A stretch of DNA of 64,000 nt, taken from contig NW_026781893.1 of assembly GCF_031769215.1 (NCBI RefSeq), forward strand, positions 744,001-808,000, read 5' to 3'. Shown one piece after another: positions 11,434-29,923 of the stretch. The translations under genes were made by a program, and so were the position numbers. Under the pieces are notes generated by a model, which did no database searches, was not told the DNA's origin, and saw only the letters and a list, made by a program, of their open reading frames with translations. The DNA comes from Ylistrum balloti (lineage: Eukaryota). Numbering within the stretch: the first letter of the stretch is position 1; every line of letters begins with the position of its first letter.

Positions 11434-11663
11434 TCACAGTTCCTCTCCATGTTTGTGATGAGTCTGCAATGATCCAACATCAGCATTCTGTATTAAGTGT
11501 TTGTAGAAGTTAATAGCTTGTTCGTAATTATTTACAGAAAGGCGTTCATTATTCCCGTGGAATCGTGGGATATCGTCAGGAAACATGAACGTGGGACTAA
11601 ACCTGTAGATGTTGTGGGTGAATGGAGTGTAGTGAATGGTGTCCGTGTTGCCAATCATAACTC
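11434..11663 (-). CDS. PM20D1: PM20D1 alternative terminal exon 11b (distal)
   Basis: Acceptor TTTTATTTCTGAACAG, phase 1, 230 bp, no stops. Encodes GVMIGNTDT...RFHGNNER...HKHGEEL*. Same length as exon 11a and 48/76 aa identical to it (hand count). Confidence 0.85.
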
Positions 11664-13059
11664 CTGTTCAGAAATAAAAGGTAAACCTACTAAAACATTG
11701 GACAGGTGAAGTTCTCTACAAAATTTACCTATCAAAGACTAATTATTTTTTTCGGTGCAGCTTCCTTAAAGACATCTACTCTCTGTATAATAAATTGCGA
11801 TTGTTTGACTCATATCAGTCTTAAATTTCCTCAAAGCTATAATTGAGATTTCAGGTGAGTGAAAAACAGTTTAATAGTACAATTTCTCAATATAATCAAA
11901 TTGTGAAAGACTACCTGATATACTGTATATCATCTTTGAAACAAAATAAACAAAGAAACAAAATTTACAAATGTATATACTATAGTATCGCATGACTTAT
12001 AATATGCCATACCAAGATTTCAACACGTTTTACACAAGGACGGGTCTTAGGTAAAGTAGAGGGTTCATAAAGTGCATTTAGTATATCACTAGGTTATCAC
12101 TACATTAAAGGGACATTTCATATTTTGCAACCCTACAACGAACTTCATAAAAGTTAGCAATTCATGCAACAATTATGACAAATGTTCTGTTAAGAGTTTA
12201 GTGCGATACAAAGTATTCTAATCTGTCTGGCAAGACAATGAAGCCATATTGACAAACAATGGCTGCATGTGTGCTGTGACAAGCTGAAGCCAAAGTGAGA
12301 TAGAACTTCACATATTTAGGTAATTTCACTACATTGGTTACTTACTATGATTAAGTTGTGACTACCTAATAATTGCTTTATGATCGTTAAATCATTTGAT
12401 GCTCAAACACACAGATAGGCCCACTGAGTGACACATTGAGAGAATTTACATAGACTACACAGTCAAGGTCTTTAACTTTTGTAGCAATGCTATGAGGATT
12501 CAACAGTCATTTAAGTTCTTATTAAATCAAAAAAAGGGATATCGTCAGATTAAAATGAAATGCTGGTACATGTATTAGCGGTGTAAGATGAACTTCCCAG
12601 TTATACATGTACTACAGTTACATGGTAGACAGAGAAAGGCCTGACAATACTTCAGAAAGTGGGCATGATATCATTCAATGTGTGCTTTCATTCAGCAAGT
12701 TATTATTGAAGCCCAAACATATCTAACACATAATAGAGTAAGAAAATAGGCACAAATTTTGTTTATGAATTTGTGGCTTTTCGTCTTCAGGGTTTGTCAT
12801 AACCTGTTACACATCCCAATTCTACCGCACTGATTCTTTTAAAAATATCCAATTAATAGAAACGATTCAATAATACAGTTCATATATTTCCACATCTATG
12901 ATTGAATATTTCTTTCAAATCATTTAGATTTTCCATAACTTTCAATCTGGGTCATCATATTGTTCATCCTATTGCACCTTGGTAATCCAAGGAGAACTAA
13001 ATAGCTCCATGGTGAGTGTCTAATTTGATATGCAATATTCACCATATTCTGATTTTGCC

Positions 13060-13395
13060 TGCCAGGAAACATAAGCTAATATTTTGTGTACCAGGGAAAC
13101 ATGCTCATATATTGTGTGCCAGAGAAACATAAGTTAATATTTTGTGAGCCAGCGAAACATAAGCTAATATTTTGTGTACCAGGGAAACATGCTCATATAT
13201 TGTGTGCTAGGGAAACATGCTCATATTTTGTGTGCCAGAGAAACATAAGTTAATATTTTGTGTTCCTGGGAAACATGATCATATTTTGTGAGCCAGGGAA
13301 ACATAATTTAATATTTTGTGCTCCAGGAAAACATATGTTCAATTATTTTGTGTTAGGGAAACAAATTGCTGGAATTTTGTTTGTCAGGGAATTTG
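13060..13395. repeat. 28-30 bp minisatellite, about 11 copies, just downstream of the PM20D1 exon 11a stop
   Basis: Alternating variants AGGGAAACATGCTCATATTTTGTGTGCC and AGAGAAACATAAGTTAATATTTTGTGAGCC. Confidence 0.9.
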
Positions 13396-13444
13396 CTGAT
13401 GTTTAACATATCCTTGTAAATGAGTGGATTTTTACTGGCCTGAA

Positions 13445-16400
13445 TTACAAGTCCTCTGTGTGTGTATGGGTTTGAGAGATGCCATCTTTCTCACTGTTTT
13501 GTATTAAGTGAACATAGAAGTTGATAGCTTGTTCAAAATTTCTAGTCGATATGCGTTCGTTGTTGCCATGGAATCTTTTCAGATCTTCTGGATACATAAC
13601 GCTAGGGCTGAATCTGTAGATGTTACGTGTGAGTCGAGTGTAGTATTTGGTGTCCGTGTTTCCTATCATTACTCCTGAAATGTCAACAGACTGACTGAAA
13701 TAACAAGTACATTCCCTCATCTTCCAATACTTCTTATCCATAATGCACTGCAAACTGCTGCCTAATGTTCAAATCATGTATAATATAATGATATCAGTAG
13801 TCTGTTATTCATCCAAACTGGCCTCCACCATAACAAGGTAAAAACAAGTACATCAGTATCTCTATATGGCCAAGAGTTAATTTGACCCTTCAACCTGAAG
13901 ACTTCCAAAAACATACAACACCACACCAAGGTATAGCTCGATCAATAAATTTGTTTTTAAGGGTGGATATGTTGTATACAATCTATATACTTAAATTCAC
14001 CTTGGTCGTCAATTATACTTCATTCTATAATCAGGCAGAGAAAGATACTACATCATACCACAGCATAAATAACTAAACCTGGTGAAGAAGTTAACGGGAT
14101 ATCTTATACACTAACTTTCACCATAGAGGGTCTAAGCCAAATGAACGGATATTACTAGAAAAATACTTCCCATCTACCAAGTAAAGTGTATATATCTACA
14201 ACGTACACAGTTGATGATTTCCTAATACATAATATAAGTTCCATCCAACAAAAGGAAACAGTGATTCGGAGGAAGTTAGTAAAAATGAAATTAAAAACAA
14301 ACGTGAACAACATGCACATGCAAATTATTGTTAACATTTTAAATATATTTCTCACTTAATGAAGCACTGGTATTTAGCTTACTGAATGTATTTAAAATGT
14401 TATTTATACTAAATATCAAGTTCAATGTTATTACATTGAAATGAGATCCTTTTGATGGTAAACTTGAACATTTTAAATGATACATGTATAACGTTTTTAT
14501 ATCATGTATCAATTTTAACTGTACTTTATCACATTTCTCAAAAAGATATTGAAATTCATCATTTTAGGTTTATGACCAGAAAGGTAATGTATCCTTAGTT
14601 TACTTAAAATACCTTACCTGGAGCCACAGCGGCCTCTGTCCAGACTTGTCTGATGCTGGACTTTACCATCTGGAAGCCAAAGTCATAGTCCCCGTAGGGC
14701 GACATAGGGAGGGGCTCCATCGATGACTCAACAGTGATCTTGACACGGTCATCTCCAATTAACTGCCGGTCAAAATCTATCACCTAAAAAAAATCAATCT
14801 TAATTTTACATCATATATTGCTTATTTGCTTAAAAAAATAATCAGTATATTTAGAATATCTTTCTCAAGGTCACATATATTGTCTATGTATCTGATAATA
14901 AAAGTACAGATTAAAAATTTTAGTCACACATTTGGCACAAAAAGTATAATGTTATATTTAATCTTCAAAAGTCTTGAATGATGCACATCAAACATAAGCT
15001 TACCTGCTGTATTGACTGAGCAGGATGGAGTCGGTGATTAACATAAGCCGTCACCTCAGGAGGTAATACATTTACCTGGAAAACAGTGAACATGATCTTC
15101 TTAGCCGGTACATTTTGTACCAGAATATCAAATCATCAAACAATGCTAGCTTCATGTTCTAAAGGTTGAGTATATAAATGTATCATGATTACCATCAATG
15201 ACAGACTTCATATTCACAGCCAGTGATACTGATATTTAACCTTTACACTCATATTTACGTGTAATATTACCTTCACACCTCCATTTATCATGGTGACTGA
15301 CGTAACCGTGCGGACAATGGCATTAGTGGAAGGCTTCTTTGACAAAAACCTTTAAAGTAAACAAAATCTAGGGTACAACTTCCAAAACAGCAATAATTAG
15401 GCTACCTTAGCCAGACCAAGAATACAGAAAGGTCTGATTATCAATCAACCAGCTAATAGATACAAACACATATCATCAACCAATCAGATATTAGTTACAA
15501 ACAAATTTCATCAACCAACCAGATATTAGTAACAAACAAATTTCATCAACCAATCAGATATTAGTAACAAACACATATCATCAACCAATCAGATATTAGT
15601 TACAAACACATGTCATCAACCAACCAGATATTAGTTACAAACAAATTTAATCCACCAATCAGATATTAGTTACAAACAAATATTATCAACCAACCAGATA
15701 TTAGTTACAAACAAATATTATCAACCAACCAGATATTAGTTACAAACAAATATTATCAACCAATCATATATTAGTTACAAACAAATATCATCAACTAACC
15801 AGATATTAGTTACAAACAAATAGTGTATTTCATGTATACTGAATGAACAACATCAGAGGTCAATTCAAAGAATGAAAAGTTATAACAACAAAATGGTGTA
15901 CTTAACAAAATATTACATACAACAATTACAGATGAAAAGATTTTATAAGTCTTTATTCATACATGTATATCTGATATATTGCAAAAAGCCATGAATTAGG
16001 AAATATTTGGCATAACAAATAAAATTATTCAAGCAATCAAGCAGATCAGTGTCACTCTTTAATAATTTAAGTTAAAATGCCAACAAGGCCAATTAATGCA
16101 TTGAAATTAATCTTAGGATGTACAGACAATTTAAATGGCCTTCCACTCCTTATTACACACTAACTTCAAATGAATGTGTGCACTATACGAGATCCTACAC
16201 ATGCTGCCTTAAGACGTGATCAGTAATAGTGAAATCAGACCATATATTTAGGTAGTAAATAAGCTCTGTGTTCTAGTATACTTACCATGATATGATGGGT
16301 TTAAACAGCCACAAATTTGACATCACTACCCGAAATGGCCACTTCATCTATAAATACAATATTTTATCACTGAGAATACCAGTAACTCTGGCTCACAGTT

Positions 16401-19400
16401 TCATTACCTTGAATACACAGTTTAAATCGATGTGATTTGATTCAGGGAATCTTTCATAATGCAAATTATTACAGTATATTTTAATTCTGTTGCATATAAT
16501 CCACTCTTACAGTTGCTTTTCCGCAGTTCAAATTTTTCAGTTTTATCAAAAGCTTAAAGTCTACGAAAAGCATTTTCATGGAATATTGTTTATTTTTTCA
16601 TCTATTGATTTTCATATCATTTTGTTTGCTTGTTTTTGTTTTTATTCCATCCTCAAAATTTAGAACCCGTAAGATTTAACAACTTTTACAGTATTGAAAT
16701 ATTATGCCTATTTACACTATACTTAGAAATCTGAAGTCATTTTGACTTTGAAGTCAACTGTTCCTTCAATGTAAGTATCTCAAAACAAGAGGCCTAATGG
16801 GCCTATAGCACTCACGTCTTATTGTGACATGTTATTGTATATTTGTTTCCTGATAAAATGGACAGATTTGACAAATTAATTGTTACTTCTCTGACTCATA
16901 TCATATTTTATATTCATGTATACTTAGACATTCAGGAACACCAACATGTGAAGCAAGATGCTGGAAAGTGTCTATCTCAGGTCCTTGTCCAAACATGCTG
17001 GGATGGCAGTCTGTTGTCAGTCTGTAAATCATACCTGGACATATGAAATTTCAGCAATTTCATTCCATCAAATATTGGTCTGTAAGACTGCAAGAACTAA
17101 ATAGGTGTTATACTCTACAAGAGAGAGTGACATGCTGCATGGTGACAGACAGGATAAGACACAGCAAAAACATAACAGGAGTTGAACAGACAGGTTGCTT
17201 TGAGAATCAAATGTTTAATCAAAAGGCATGAAATAATACATTATTGATCAACTTTCTCCACTTTACAATAACATTTGTTCACATCCAGTAAGACATAAGA
17301 GAGAGTACTACAACTATGAAATTCATATTTTAATGACTAGATATGGCACTAACCATGAAGAGCTACTATCATGGTTCTATATGGAGCCTACACTATTTAA
17401 AGTAATATCTAAATGTTTGCATTTCCTCTTGTGATAAGACTCGAAAATCAAAAGAAACATCTATATATAAGAGGGACAGGAATAACATGTAGACTATTAA
17501 ATATAGTGACTTTGAATATATGTGTTAATAAGAAAACAGCTTCCCAAGGAAGTCTAATTTACTTTTGCTAGAATAACATTTCCCTACACAACAGTACTAC
17601 TGAAGTGGGTATGCTGGTTTTCAGAAACCAATCAATCTACATTCAACACATCAGTAATGTTGAAGTCCAGAGAACTGTACCAGCTAGCATCCAAAGTTCA
17701 TATGACTGGCATTTAACAAACCAATCAAACCCTGTGTCTTACTTTGAAATAGCATTAGCCATTATTCCAATGCTTGTTTCCTTAGTGGGCATGGAGGAAT
17801 GACCTGTGTCCCATTTGACGTTTAACTTCAGGGTCAGATAGCCTTTCTCTGCCGTACCTATCCTGTGGAAGATACAATGTACATGATACATACTAGTTAC
17901 AGGTCATCCCAGTATTACAAATTAAATACTGTGGTTCAATTCTTCTGTTTCCCATTGAAGTATATGAATTATGCGACAATCAGCCAAAATGTGGTGGTAA
18001 GCCCTCACAAATCTCTTTAAAATTCAGTAGCAATGAGCCGCAAAATGTGATTCCATTGTCCTGAAATCACGCGCCAGCCTGCTTGAGTCAAAGGATAAGT
18101 GTTGGCTTTTCAGCCTTACTCAGATAGTGACAGTCCTTGAATCCATCTTTCCAGTAACATGGATATCAATAAATATTTTAACAATCAAGAGTACATATGA
18201 CAACATGTGTAGAGGGTATTTCACATCAGAAATACTTACAGTGCCACAGGTCTATCTATCCCTGGTATAACATTGTTTACAATGGTCAGTCCTTCATCCA
18301 CTAGAAACTCCAGCTTGCGAATACCTCGTGACCACAGCAGGTTACTGATAGATCGAGCACCATCTAAACCTGTTACCTGTTCACAAACATAATCATGTAA
18401 GATGGAAAACTTCACCATTTGCACCATTTGTTACTGTATGTTTCTTGATATTAGCTGATCATATTTAATACATCATATTAAGATCCAGATGTTTTAAATT
18501 ATGGAGATAAGCAAATAAGACAGTAAAACTATCTCCAAACTCTGTCGATACTTTGTTATTTATATCTTAAGTGATGAAATTGAACTGCTCATACAGTTGG
18601 TAAATTTATTTTTAAGTCATTAAGACACATGGGACAAGCTTTCAGCATCAAATATTCTACTATCCAATGTTTGATAATTGTCAACTTTTGCTTTTGTAGT
18701 GTTGCAGTATTTCTCAGGATATTTCCTGAACAAGATGATGTACCACTTGATGGATAGAGTGTGACCCATCAGTCGCAGTATGCCTAGGCAACAAAAAAAC
18801 CTAAAACAACACAGAACTTCTTATATGGCAGAAAAAAAGCCAATGATTCTTCCTTTCATTCACCTCTTAATAAAAATTTTTAAAAAATCCTGACCTCCAC
18901 TACCTTAACTTTATAACTAGGTATATCTCATTTCATGTTCCAGTTAGAGGTATTGACTCCCAGAAAACATTTCAACTTACTTGTTTTCTCAAGCTCAAAG
19001 TTAAGTTCCTTTAGTATTTGTAGCATGCGACTCCACGAGTTAAAGCTAAACAGGTATATCATCCTCCATTATTTTTTTTTATCCTATCTCCTGTACATAT
19101 AATTACACTAAAACTAAATAAACTATTTTCTCCTCAGATTTATTGGCTTCTTAATGTCCAGAACCTAGGAATATCCTTTCTTATTTCTACCACAGACTTA
19201 ATTACCTCCTCATCATGCCCAAAGCCAATGTAGAATGACCGCTGTGGTTTGAACCCTCTAGATAACAGGTGCTCCAACGCCTCCAAAACTCCCTGTAAAG
19301 AAAACAAAATCATTCACCAGCACATAAATACATTAGCAAGTCATCTTTAACAATCCCTTTACTTTGTCTTGTATGGACCTCAACAGTATGTACATAGAAT

Positions 19401-21738
19401 AAGTTACAGTCTGCATGAATGATAGTGACAAACATATCTTTTCATTATAATTTGTATAGCTAGTATTGAAGTATTACAGTTGTATATATAATGATCACTT
19501 GCAGTATATTTAAATGTTAAATTTATCTTTAGTTTTAGTACATACATTGTATATGTTAACCAAGTCCGCACAAGTTTAGGGGCATTGGCATATTACAACC
19601 AGTTACCATCACAATCTAATATACTGTCGCTACCTAGATATCTACTCATGGTTCAGTTTTCTAAAATAATGGTATAATGTAATATACTATTACTTATCAA
19701 AAAGAATGTTTTCCGTCATTTATCTACCATCCCTTTTATTCTGTTAGGTTTCCAATTTCTAATGACAGTCTACAGCCTGCTGTATTAGAGAACATCATAT
19801 TCTATTTTATACTTCTATGTACAGGTAAAATCCGGAGAATTTTTACACCCATTTTACTCAATTTGTATCATGTATTTCCATTGGTTGACATCTAGTATAG
19901 ATAATTGGCAATATAATTTCACTTAATCCTCTCCCAAAACGGTTGTTCTCTTGTGACATAGGCATTACTCCGACATTTTTACATCCACTATAATAATGGA
20001 ATCTACTGCAGAAGTAACTCCTTAGATTTATAACTTCATATCATTTCTAGTCTCCAATATTCACCAATATTCTCCAACATGTCAACCTGATCAACATTAG
20101 TATAAGGAGACTGGTTGTCTAAATAAGTTCAGTAAGATTAAAAACATGTCTATTGTATTTTGTGAGTAATCTTCAGTATTACTGGTGTTCTTGTGAATAC
20201 TCGGTTAATCTAAACAGTGTTTATCTACTATTAACCGGAAATTGTCAATAATCAGGAATAAAGTCCAATATATTTCTTTTGGGGTCTGTTGCTGTGGCAA
20301 GGTGTATCTGGGAGCAATTTATTACACCATATGAGATAGGTGTGAAAATTGTACACATAATAGATATTGTCTGTTTTGTTGTATTATTAAATGTTCTAAG
20401 TTGAATTTTGACTTTGTGTTGTTGATAACCGTCGAGAAGAGTTCTTTACTAGAACAGAGAATCAAGTGTACCAGATGAACCCAACAAACATCATATTTAT
20501 CAATAAACTGAATAATTAGCTGTGTTACAGCCTAGCTGTATGCAAATAAATATTTCTCTATTTATTCCGGACCAAAGAAAGAAAATGATTTTCAACTTGC
20601 CAAAAATTTGCTACTGAAGGAGTATAGCAGCATACTTACCATAACAATGTGTTTGTCATCGATTGTTCCCCTAGCATAGATAAAACCATCATGGATCTCT
20701 GCCCCAAATGGAGGATGGTCCCACAAGCTAGGGTCAGCTGGTACAACATCAAGATGTCCTGTTATCATGTATGGGGTGAGGCTGGAGTTCTCTCCCCTGA
20801 CAGTATATAACAAACTGTGGTTTGCTACATCTTCACAAGTAACAAACGATGAGGAGTGAATATTTGGATAGGCTACAAAATGACATATGAGAATCTCATC
20901 AGATGGTATTTTCAAGAAAGTGATTGCAACAATAATATATTAGCTATATGATTTTTCTTAAAGGTACATGAGGAAATCACATTAAAAACTGAACAGTCCA
21001 TGTATGATGTATGTTTTATTTGAATACTGAATACTGGTATATTCAAATTTACAGACTCAAAAGCTCTACTTTTGTGTATCAAGTGGTTTTGTTGGAGCTA
21101 AAATCACTGGGATGTGGTCCAGGGGAGATAATTTTGTACCAGATAAAGTCTAAATGCTAATTCAAAGACCAATGTATATGTAATTAGCTTACATGTTTAT
21201 ATCTAGCTGGCATGTATGTTGTTAAACATGTGCATGGGTGTCATGTTTATCTCCCCTAGCCATTCGGCTTGTTACTCTCGAAAATATTTCAGTGTGTTGT
21301 CATGGTGACGTGCAACGCTGTTCAGATTAAGCATTAGTGTAACCAGTAATCCTGCTTCCTACTGTTTACAATTGCACTTCCACTTTCAGTATGGTTTATA
21401 GTATGCAACAGATAGCTGACAGAAGGACTTAAGTTTATATTTCCGGTATTTCAAAATGTCTATGGTCAATTACCCGATTTAATAAACGACGTTAACTTCT
21501 GGAGTTCTTCTTCGTCGTATACGTGTGGACTTGTGGCTACAGTCCGCATCCTCAACGATCGCCGAAATCTTTCTACTACCGCAGGCGTTGCCTGCACAAA
21601 GTCCTCATCACTTTTGGCACAAGGTGTCACGTCGTCTGTCCGCACCGAAAATGTCAATGTTCTTAAAACAATCACAGTTATAACTACACTTAGGACAACA
21701 GAAAATAAAGATAGAATACTTTTCAATAAGTGTTGCAT
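13445..21738 (-). CDS. PM20D1: PM20D1: N-fatty-acyl-amino acid synthase/hydrolase, M20 metallopeptidase, 508 aa
   Basis: Exons (minus strand): 21738-21474, 20872-20640, 19292-19206, 18376-18240, 17862-17743, 17021-16946, 16347-16286, 15349-15271, 15075-15004, 14783-14618, 13674-13445. All introns are GT-AG with consistent phases; total 1527 nt. N-terminal signal anchor. M20 motifs [33 protein letters not shown] and RFHGNNE are present. Confidence 0.95.
15440..15822. repeat. 34-35 bp minisatellite, about 11 copies, PM20D1 intron 7
   Basis: Unit CAACCAATCAGATATTAGTTACAAACAAATATCAT. Confidence 0.95.
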
Positions 21739-27087: not shown

Positions 27088-29923
27088 CTATAGCTCTTGC
27101 TTCTGTTGTCGTAGTTTGTATGCAGCTGGATCATATTTTGGCATGAGTTCCTCTACTGTACGTATGAAGTCTGATTTCTCTGCACATCCTTTACATGCAT
27201 CACTGCGGTCCCAGTCACTGAGAATTTCCTTCAGCTGCTTCACGCGTAGCTTCTTCAGGTCTATCTCGGCAAGGTTCATCTTCTTTTCTGTAATTAAGTT
27301 TACAAAAATTTTAAAATGAAGAAAAAATGTGGCAGTGTATGTAACACACTTCTCTTAAACAAAACAACTGGGTTTGATTTCATTTCATTTCACAAAGATT
27401 CCATTAAAAAACAAAAAAATAGGTATTAGGAATAGACTAAAGTCTATATCAGACCTAAGGTGGAAAAATGGATACATAGTTATTATATTACATAATGATA
27501 TATCATACATTCACTAAAACATGAACAACTGACATCTATGGGTACCACATATAATGAGTTACCTCCCCTATATCTTGTGCATGAAAAACTACTTCAAATA
27601 TATCTGGTATGTTTGATCATCTAATTATTGGAATGACAGAAAACAAATAATCCAGACAAATTAGACAAAGTGTGGTCTCTCTGTCTGAATGCATGATTTC
27701 ACTGTTTTCTTTCAGGCGGAGTACTACAAAATGTTGAAATAGTGGTTGACCACCAATGCTAACGCTGAACATCACTAAAAATTTCAAATTTCAATTGGCA
27801 AAAAAGTCTTGAAACTTACTTATTTTTATTTCACAAATCTGGGAATCTTTCTTATTCAATGTTTCACAAATCTTTTCTGCTGGTTTATTAAATGACAAAG
27901 GTCTTGTGATTTCATTAAGCATGCCTGTAGCTGATGTCTCCAGCCCTCCGATATAATAACACTGAAAATAAACAATTTATTATGTCAATGAATCTTTATG
28001 AATATTTTGATATATTAAAGCTGTTTCAAATCTATGTGTTGGATTTTTCTTTGCTTTATTTCTATATTTAAAAATGGGTAATTTCACTAAAGGTATTAGG
28101 GCCCACCTTTAGAGGCTATACATGTAAATCTATCAATTTGCAAAGCTGTGATTTTTTTAGGTTCAAACTGCTCGTTATTGATAGTCAAACAGTGCTTATA
28201 CTCATATTTTATAAGAGGTCATGGAATTTGTTTTGAAAAGCAGAGTTTTTGTGTTGGAAACCTGTAATTATTACAGGGAAAAACACAAATACTTACTAAA
28301 AATGATCATATACTTCAGGGTTATTTTTTTGTTGTCTAATAATTAAATACATTTTTAAGTTAATAGTACACTGTGGAAGTTTTTCACCTTTTGACTTCAT
28401 TGTATATTTTTGAGTTGCACTGAAAACTAGGTCATGTATGAATATTTCAATTTAATATGTTTATGAAATATGTTTAATCATGCATACTTACAATTCTTTC
28501 ATATTCTTTGGTTGTGGTTTTTTTACAAAAGGCTAATAATTCTGTCTTGATCTTGTCCTTATCTTTGCGTGTATTGTCTGATACAGTTTCATCGAATGCC
28601 TTCACAAAGTTCACACATGCTGTAAATGTAAAATAATTACAAATTCAGACGACAGTAGAGTATCGATCTTTAAGAATGACTGAAATCTCAAATAATATTT
28701 TACCATAATTAATACTAACAGATGGATTATAATTCTTTAATGTACATGTGCATTTTGCTGCTGGACCACACATGCACACGACAATAGAAAGACCTGCCAT
28801 GCTCCATCAGCTGAGTGAAAATGACCAATGGATCAGGTTGAAAATTTAAATGCTGATGGTGAATGAGAGACATTTTATGACAAACATGATGTGCATGTAT
28901 ATATTGCTACACAAAGTTTTGTCAATTCTTTTCTCATTTTAGTGAGGCTACCAATGCCATTCGGAGGATCTTGAATGGAAATCTGGGAATCTCAATATTT
29001 GTATTGTGTATGGCTGATAATGGAATTTCCACTTGATTTGTTAAATGTACTGTCTCATATAATACAAGTGCCAATGCTAAAATTCTCGACTATAAAACAT
29101 CATTAAAAGACTTTAAATTTCTATCAGGATTTATTAGGGATGGTAAATTAGTAATGGACACAGGCTTTAAACTCTATTCATATTATATGTATCAAGCAAA
29201 ATATTACAAGGCAGTTTGCACATAGTATTTCATCATGTAATAGTTGATATACTCAACATCATGAATGTATGATATCAAAATTACACAAAGTGTTTGTATA
29301 CGGTACAGCCACTACAGGGTCTTAATTCTTCCAATGTTTCAAACTCCATCTAAATGGATTTCAAATTTCTTAATTTCAATTTCACGTTCAAATGATTTTA
29401 TGTAATACATGTGTATTTCTGGGCTAACTTGAGTGTTTCTGTGATTTAGTGAAGTTACCAGAAGTGGAAGTGCAATCACGTCAATCATTTCAAGTATGTG
29501 ATTTTGAGATAGTATCTTTGGATATTTCTAGATAAAATATTTGCCTTTCATCAGTCAGTTTTTAAATAAATGTTATAGTATTAAGATATATCCAGTCATT
29601 TATGTATTTACTTGCAGGCAGTTTATCAGCTAATGAAAATCATTCTTAAGGGGTCCGAAACTGATACACCAAGTATATAATGTTCACATGTACAAAGTAA
29701 GATACTTGAAAGCCCTTATAACTTGTGTATTTTGCAACACCATTTCAATTTCATACATGACCTGGTCAATAGTTCCGTTCTACCAACAGATTCATTCAAA
29801 AAATGATTGTTTCTTTTACAAATGAATAGCTAATATACCTTCACAATCTTCTGGTCTGTACTTCGCATTGACGATGACAACACACCACGCGACAACTGTC
29901 AGACACACCAACTTCTTCTCCAT
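27088..29923 (-). CDS. MANF: MANF/CDNF (ARMET) family ER-stress protein, 184 aa
   Basis: Exons 29923-29839, 28619-28492, 27961-27820 and 27287-27088 (555 nt, GT-AG, phases 1/0/1). Has a signal peptide, 8 Cys, [20 protein letters not shown], the CKGC motif, ELMPKY and a C-terminal KQEL. Confidence 0.96.

Follow-up and report, generated by a model that had tools for sequence, protein, structure and literature searches.

Vertebrate PM20D1 is reportedly a secreted, bidirectional synthase/hydrolase of N-acyl amino acids, lipid signals that are made and broken by this enzyme and that have been studied mainly in mammals. Here we describe a PM20D1.2-like gene of the saucer scallop Ylistrum balloti in which the last coding exon is present in two tandem copies, referred to as exon 11a (upstream) and exon 11b (downstream). 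The gene lies in a stretch of 64,000 nucleotides (nt), positions 744,001 to 808,000 of contig NW_026781893.1 in the NCBI RefSeq assembly GCF_031769215.1; this stretch is called the window, and positions in Y. balloti are given relative to its first letter. The vertebrate enzyme belongs to the same family as the scallop protein, shares its M20 catalytic and dimerisation layout and its ligand pattern, and is 45-50% identical to it; a duplicated last exon was not seen in the vertebrate PM20D1 entries. The names of the fish genes PM20D1.1 and PM20D1.2 suggest a whole-gene tandem duplication in fish, unlike the exon duplication in scallops. As a general class, mutually exclusive tandem exons offer a parallel, since they are likewise homologous neighbours of equal length and phase that encode alternative versions of one segment.

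The closest described systems are the isoform pairs listed in RefSeq for two other scallops, Mizuhopecten yessoensis (XP_021378344.1 and XP_021378345.1) and Argopecten irradians (XP_069142745.1 and XP_069142746.1), all of which are 508 amino acids long. Their genes are orthologous to that of Y. balloti and carry both exon types, ordered alike, and the members of each pair diverge only from residue 435/436 on. In Mizuhopecten, X1 is the 11b-type and X2 the 11a-type isoform, and in Argopecten X1 is the 11a-type and X2 the 11b-type. These scallop isoforms are automatic gene models, and for Y. balloti and Pecten maximus only 11b-type products are listed. A first-pass annotation of the window, made from the sequence alone, had proposed two isoforms produced through a duplicated exon. 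The 508-residue pairs of Mizuhopecten and Argopecten speak for the isoforms themselves but temper their novelty, since scallop and mussel pairs are already listed. Alternative C-termini are thus already public in the annotation of sister scallops, and what is added here is an unannotated, conserved exon 11a in Y. balloti with an altered splice donor. In the literature, no paper was found on PM20D1 in scallops or on alternative C-terminal isoforms of PM20D1 (the matches on isoforms and splicing were unrelated reviews), and nothing was found on PM20D1 H465 or H465A.

Taking the evidence below together, we consider it likely that a tandem duplication left 11a as a cassette exon that carries its own stop codon and 11b as a constitutive last exon, giving one gene two enzyme C-termini. 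In Y. balloti, a splice-aware search gave an 11-exon spliced model with 11b as its last exon (21738-21474 ... 14783-14618, 11663-11434), which exactly reproduces the 508-residue protein XP_060070411.1. RefSeq names this protein [quoted passage not shown], and its C-terminus is 100% identical to 11b; the queries that led to this record were the 11a peptide and, after it, a full-length relative. The synthase/hydrolase name is a RefSeq label, and the function is predicted by homology only. The whole-gene range of the window is identical to the locus JAUZWB010000084.1 of GCA_031769215.1, and since XP_060070411.1 ends in 11b, the annotated last exon is 11b. A second Y. balloti product in the protein collection, X2 (385 amino acids), has the 11b end as well.

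Exons 11a and 11b are both 230 nt long and in phase 1, have good acceptors (tttcag and gaacag for the 11a/11b pair), and reach their stop at the same codon. The codon for a Gly is split as G/GA (here and below, a slash within a splice site marks the exon boundary), with the G supplied by exon 10 and GA opening both 11a and 11b, so the same donor and phase suit either exon. The two copies are identical at 47 of 75 residues (63%) and at 66% of their nucleotides, with 18, 19, and 40 differences at the first, second, and third codon positions respectively, while their 100-nt flanks are 28-29% identical, which is the chance level. When each exon of the gene was searched with tblastn against the whole window, a second copy was found for the last exon only (E ~1e-30). 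The first-pass annotation had described this geometry, namely two stop-free exons on the minus strand with kept motifs, unrelated flanks, and no further duplicated exon that would point to a second gene, and its description agrees with our results throughout. Judging by the same length, the same phase, and the adjacent position of the homologous exons, the pair is a tandem duplicate of one exon within a single PM20D1-like gene.

The arrangement was also found outside the window. A contig of 7.3 kilobases (kb) from an independent DNA run, which differs from the window by about 0.5%, spans exon 10, 11a, and 11b, and two independent assemblies therefore agree on the order of these exons. In this second individual, 11a is unchanged, 11b carries a conservative substitution (Val43Ile, at position 11535), and exon 10 has two synonymous changes. 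The independent contig, together with the duplication of a lone exon, excludes a collapsed or misjoined paralog or a second gene, and with it the mis-assembled paralog that had been considered at the first pass.

In Y. balloti, Mizuhopecten yessoensis, Pecten maximus, and Argopecten irradians, 11a precedes 11b and both exons are intact, with 75 codons and a stop each, and the spacing between the two exons at the four loci ranges from 947 to 4919 nt. Thus, on the question raised in the first-pass annotation of whether other molluscs have both exons, order and integrity are kept across four scallop genera. Among these four scallops, orthologs are 77-88% identical for 11a and 85-92% identical for 11b, as opposed to 61-68% between 11a and 11b. 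Constraint was judged on the ratio of nonsynonymous to synonymous substitution rates (dN/dS) between orthologs rather than between the two copies, for which the value of 0.10 is soft owing to a saturated dS (2.9, or undefined). Pairwise ortholog dN/dS is 0.07-0.21 for 11a and 0.03-0.07 for 11b, and for 11a of Y. balloti and Mizuhopecten it is 0.10 at a dS of 0.65. A ratio near 1 had been a concern at the outset; the ortholog ratios of 0.03-0.21 place both copies under purifying selection, and both are therefore maintained as coding sequence, the Y. balloti lineage included.

A tree built on the 75 residues of the segment separates a clade of the four 11a sequences (support 100/97) from one of the four 11b sequences (99/97); the duplication is therefore older than the split of the four scallop genera. 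Exon 11b is nearer to the single-copy exon of oysters and gastropods (73-75% identity, vs. 58-64% for 11a), and the evolutionary rate of 11a is about twice that of 11b. The intact 11a-type exon of Pecten maximus (L001:32020-32249) is followed by GTAGGT one base past its stop and is not contained in the single RefSeq protein found for the species, which is of the 11b form. It also shows an odd run of three changes, with MDQG where the other scallops have MYPE or MYPD. Exon 11a is accordingly missing from the gene models of both Y. balloti and Pecten maximus.

Direct evidence on splicing comes from Argopecten. A complete and intronless 11a-type coding sequence is present in two Logan contigs, from SRR19746220 (1997 nt) and SRR19746226 (1751 nt), and both contigs therefore derive from spliced RNA. 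Each of them reads from exon 10 into 11a and on into the full 11b, with the junction ...TTG TGA A/GAGTATTG... between the two copies. At the same point the A. irradians genome reads TGAA/gtaggt, which places the donor 1 nt past the 11a stop, and 11b follows after its acceptor 947 nt on. As 11a is joined to 11b in Argopecten messenger RNA (mRNA), it is an internal exon of 231 nt with its own stop, and 11b is part of the mRNA either way. Alternative last exons, in which the upstream exon is never spliced to the downstream one, are not what these contigs contain. Nor are 11a and 11b mutually exclusive exons, because both contigs hold the two together; unlike in that class, exclusivity arises at the protein level, from the 11a stop. 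At least in Argopecten, the two forms thus come about by cassette inclusion and not by the alternative last-exon choice that the first-pass annotation had put forward. For annotation, the Argopecten transcripts further illustrate that an apparent second terminal exon, even a conserved one, may in reality be internal and close with a stop codon.

Based on these observations, the following mechanism is proposed. A tandem duplication of the terminal coding exon preceded the divergence of the four scallop genera sampled, and both copies stayed protein-coding. Exon 11b would serve as the constitutive last exon, and 11a, located downstream of exon 10 and upstream of 11b, as an optional cassette whose 5' splice site is 1-5 nt past its own stop. 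Skipping of 11a would join exon 10 to 11b and yield the 11b-type enzyme, while after inclusion of 11a translation would end within 11a and 11b would become 3' untranslated region. Because the 11a stop and the last exon junction nearly coincide, such an mRNA would be expected to evade junction-dependent decay. We infer that 11a is used in Y. balloti itself as well.

The isoforms share residues 1-433 and differ in the last 75 residues. This stretch makes up the last strands and the last helix of the M20 catalytic domain, and T439/D440, R453, His468-Gly469, and Glu472-Arg473 within it are invariant. The Pfam domain PF01546 covers residues 124-492 (E 8e-28 for the 11b-type and 8e-32 for the 11a-type isoform) and PF07687 is matched with E 5e-12; the M20 catalytic domain is interrupted by the dimerisation (lid) domain, which is the layout of the PM20D1 subfamily. 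H128, D130, D160, E194, E195, D222, and H468 are invariant in 79 homologs, both isoform types included. These residues correspond to the five ligands (His, Asp, Glu, Asp/Glu, His) and the catalytic Asp and Glu of the M20 pattern, and H468-G469 and E472-R473 are encoded by exon 11; ligand roles were assigned from the known M20 pattern rather than by residue-level superposition. The first-pass annotation had the segment supply the C-terminal metal-binding His, in keeping with His468 of RFHG, which is invariant and completes the five-residue ligand pattern. Exon positions D7, H35, and E39 are at 100% in 341 family sequences, H468 and E472 being among the exon-11 residues conserved to this extent, and all three positions are kept by both 11a and 11b.

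Seventeen positions are fixed differently between the scallop 11a and 11b types, all of them at sites that vary within the family; examples are K/I at 442, L-K/I-P at 464-465, V/K at 487, and S-E/A-D at 493-494. AlphaFold models of the Mizuhopecten pair have confidence scores (pLDDT, predicted local distance difference test) of 95.1 and 95.2 and near-identical secondary structure, with the last helix ending at residue 492 or 493. The modelled segment consists of a strand (429-435), a helix (440-444), a strand (451-459), a helix (461-466), a strand (473-475), and a final helix (476-492). A fold search with the model of the 11a isoform, the sole model searched, returned DapE, the carnosinases CNDP1/2, and CPG2 with a probability of 1.00. 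In a sequence search of the PDB, the alignments span only residues ~100-283, short of exon 11 and its His468. It is plausible, and we only infer from the sequence differences, that the isoforms differ in substrate range or in other properties.

Several points weigh against extending a stop-carrying cassette and a constitutive 11b from Argopecten to Y. balloti, and against a functional reading of the two ends. The junction of 11a to 11b was seen in one genus only, and transcripts joining exon 10 to 11b rest on RefSeq protein models, not on reads. The public run that matches the Y. balloti locus is DNA, with introns present in its contigs, and yields no junctions. A Y. balloti protein with the 11a end was not found in the protein collection, which holds only 11b-type products. 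A word-index search with the 75-residue 11a peptide gave two unrelated short matches and no Y. balloti fragment, and an exact look-up of the 74-residue, ATG-started open reading frame (ORF) of 11b returned no record. As to a position of the segment near the active site, the support is limited to two elements within it, the ligand His and the GNTD loop. Finally, the donor itself has changed. The sequence past the 11a stop is unalignable among the four scallops except for an invariant AGG at +4 to +6, and this gives AG/GT in Mizuhopecten, Pecten, and Argopecten (in Pecten and Argopecten, /GTAGGT is additionally present at +1, which is the site that Argopecten uses). In Y. balloti, GC stands where the other three scallops have GT (AG/GC), and the second individual has GC likewise.

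This GC could mean that Y. balloti has true alternative last exons, as the first-pass annotation supposed, each with its own cleavage/polyadenylation site and 11a never spliced to 11b. An ATTAAA 133 nt past the Y. balloti 11a stop would suit such an arrangement, and the upstream copy in Mytilus, with no nearby donor and an ATTAAA at +41, suggests that this architecture may exist in bivalves. However, 11a is spliced to 11b in both Argopecten contigs, and the AGG beside the stop, invariant although its surroundings do not align, favours a splice site that has been retained. The Y. balloti sequence CAG/GCCAGT, moreover, fits the donor consensus at 7 of 9 positions, as is typical of working GC donors, and CCA/GTAAAA follows 4 nt further on. 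On balance, we regard alternative last exons in Y. balloti as unlikely. We give still less credence to 11a being a recently silenced relic, intact but unspliced, in a species that makes the 11b enzyme only. The change from GT to GC and the exclusively 11b-type RefSeq products of Y. balloti, and also of Pecten maximus, are what such a relic would leave, but an isoform missing from automatic annotation is weak evidence. The exon is also intact, with 75 codons, its stop in place, and a good acceptor, and it is unchanged in the second individual. Its low dN/dS against Mizuhopecten and its tip branch in the tree, which is shorter in Y. balloti (0.032) than in Mizuhopecten (0.093), do not indicate relaxed constraint.

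An exon whose in-frame stop is followed by one more exon junction also recalls a regulatory "poison" exon, whose early stop sends the mRNA to decay and which provides no alternative enzyme end. The zone of about 50 nt before the last junction, however, does not trigger junction-dependent decay, a rule known mainly from vertebrates, and the 11a stop falls inside it, at a distance from that junction of between 1 nt (in Argopecten) and about 5 nt. Inclusion of 11a gives a full-length product of 508 residues that keeps all invariant catalytic residues. The strong amino acid constraint across four genera (the 11a ratios given above, with synonymous sites saturated) shows that the peptide itself is selected. 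A decay-inducing cassette was thus rejected, and we attach next to no probability to it. The stop-carrying cassette upstream of a constitutive 11b remains our preferred reading for Y. balloti, with the GC donor or the neighbouring GTAAAA as candidate 5' splice sites.

A similar organization is present in mussels. The PM20D1.2-like X1/X2 pairs of Mytilus galloprovincialis, M. edulis, M. trossulus, and a fourth Mytilus come from a last coding exon duplicated in tandem, as in scallops, and in all four species the pairs are 506 residues long and differ from residue 431 only. In M. galloprovincialis the copies are 6.8 kb apart and in the same order, and it is here that the upstream copy lacks an adjacent donor. 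The mussel copies group together (97/98), apart from both scallop types. An approximately unbiased (AU) test, underpowered with 75 columns, rejected grouping scallop 11b with the downstream mussel copy (p-AU 0.010), the other pairings being marginal (p 0.07-0.10). A duplication shared by scallops and mussels, followed by gene conversion in mussels and loss in oysters, would be an alternative history; in Crassostrea virginica, the gene and its two 10-kb flanks contain one copy only. Duplications that occurred independently in mussels and scallops are the simpler reading and probably the correct one. In Mya arenaria, the PM20D1.2-like isoforms X1 and X2, of 508 residues each, differ within residues 245-282 only. 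This variable stretch, which takes in the invariant GHSSMP motif, corresponds to the 120-nt exon 5 of the scallop gene. It seems to be another case, distinct from the last exon, of an exon in the PM20D1 family that was duplicated and is alternatively used.

By exchanging the final 75 residues of the catalytic domain, a conserved splice switch would let one gene encode two enzymes in a compact manner, and the isoform pairs could be used as natural chimeras to study the determinants of substrate choice in the PM20D1 family. That mussels probably duplicated this exon separately is a hint of recurrent selection. Speculatively, and with more doubt than confidence, bivalves may repeatedly have duplicated those PM20D1 exons that line the catalytic centre (the last exon, with its fifth metal ligand, separately in scallops and mussels, and the GHSSMP exon in Mya), with splicing switching between ranges of N-acyl amino acid substrates. 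The scallop version of such a switch would be unusual, a cassette exon with its own stop and a donor immediately past it.

Features of the PM20D1.2-like locus of Y. balloti (positions in the window)
Feature	Position	Strand	Details
PM20D1.2-like gene, start codon to 11b stop	11434..21738	minus	11 coding exons; spliced model equals XP_060070411.1
Exon 10	14618..14783	minus	166 nt; last base is the first base of the split Gly codon; donor gtaagg
Exon 11a	13445..13674	minus	2 nt + 75 codons + TAA; unannotated in Y. balloti; ortholog of the C-terminus of Mizuhopecten X2 and Argopecten X1
Exon 11b	11434..11663	minus	2 nt + 75 codons + TGA; annotated last coding exon
Candidate 5' splice sites past the 11a stop	13430..13444	minus	CAG/GCCAGT (exon end 13440, GC donor); CCA/GTAAAA (exon end 13436)
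ATTAAA	13307..13312	minus	133 nt past the 11a stop; may act as poly(A) signal should 11a be terminal
Minisatellite in the 11a-11b interval	13052..13353		30/58-nt period, about 10 copies; length differs between individuals

At the minisatellite between 11a and 11b, whose repeat can be read as a 30-nt unit or a 58-nt double unit, the contig of the other individual is 88 nt shorter than the window, and it also lacks 192 nt at 12059-12250. Directly upstream of the PM20D1-like gene, a MANF/ARMET gene lies at 27088-27279 on the minus strand, and the same neighbour is present in Mizuhopecten and Argopecten, so synteny is conserved.

The Argopecten gene record (L004, 6001-104178) spans 98 kb, with the coding exons of X1 and X2 ending at ~24.3 kb. 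A further Argopecten isoform, X3 (435 residues), ends in ...AVAPGFT without the His468 segment, exon 10 being joined to neither 11a nor 11b; it is probably joined to an exon far downstream. Among the other family members, a 145-residue ORF (P0011) has the first half of the last-exon segment twice in tandem (GVMIGNTDT...PEDLK and GVLIGNTDT...PDDLK), and in that organism the first half seems to be a separate exon that is likewise duplicated. Another product, P0001 (1003 residues), contains two PM20D1-like units and probably represents two tandem genes fused by the predictor.

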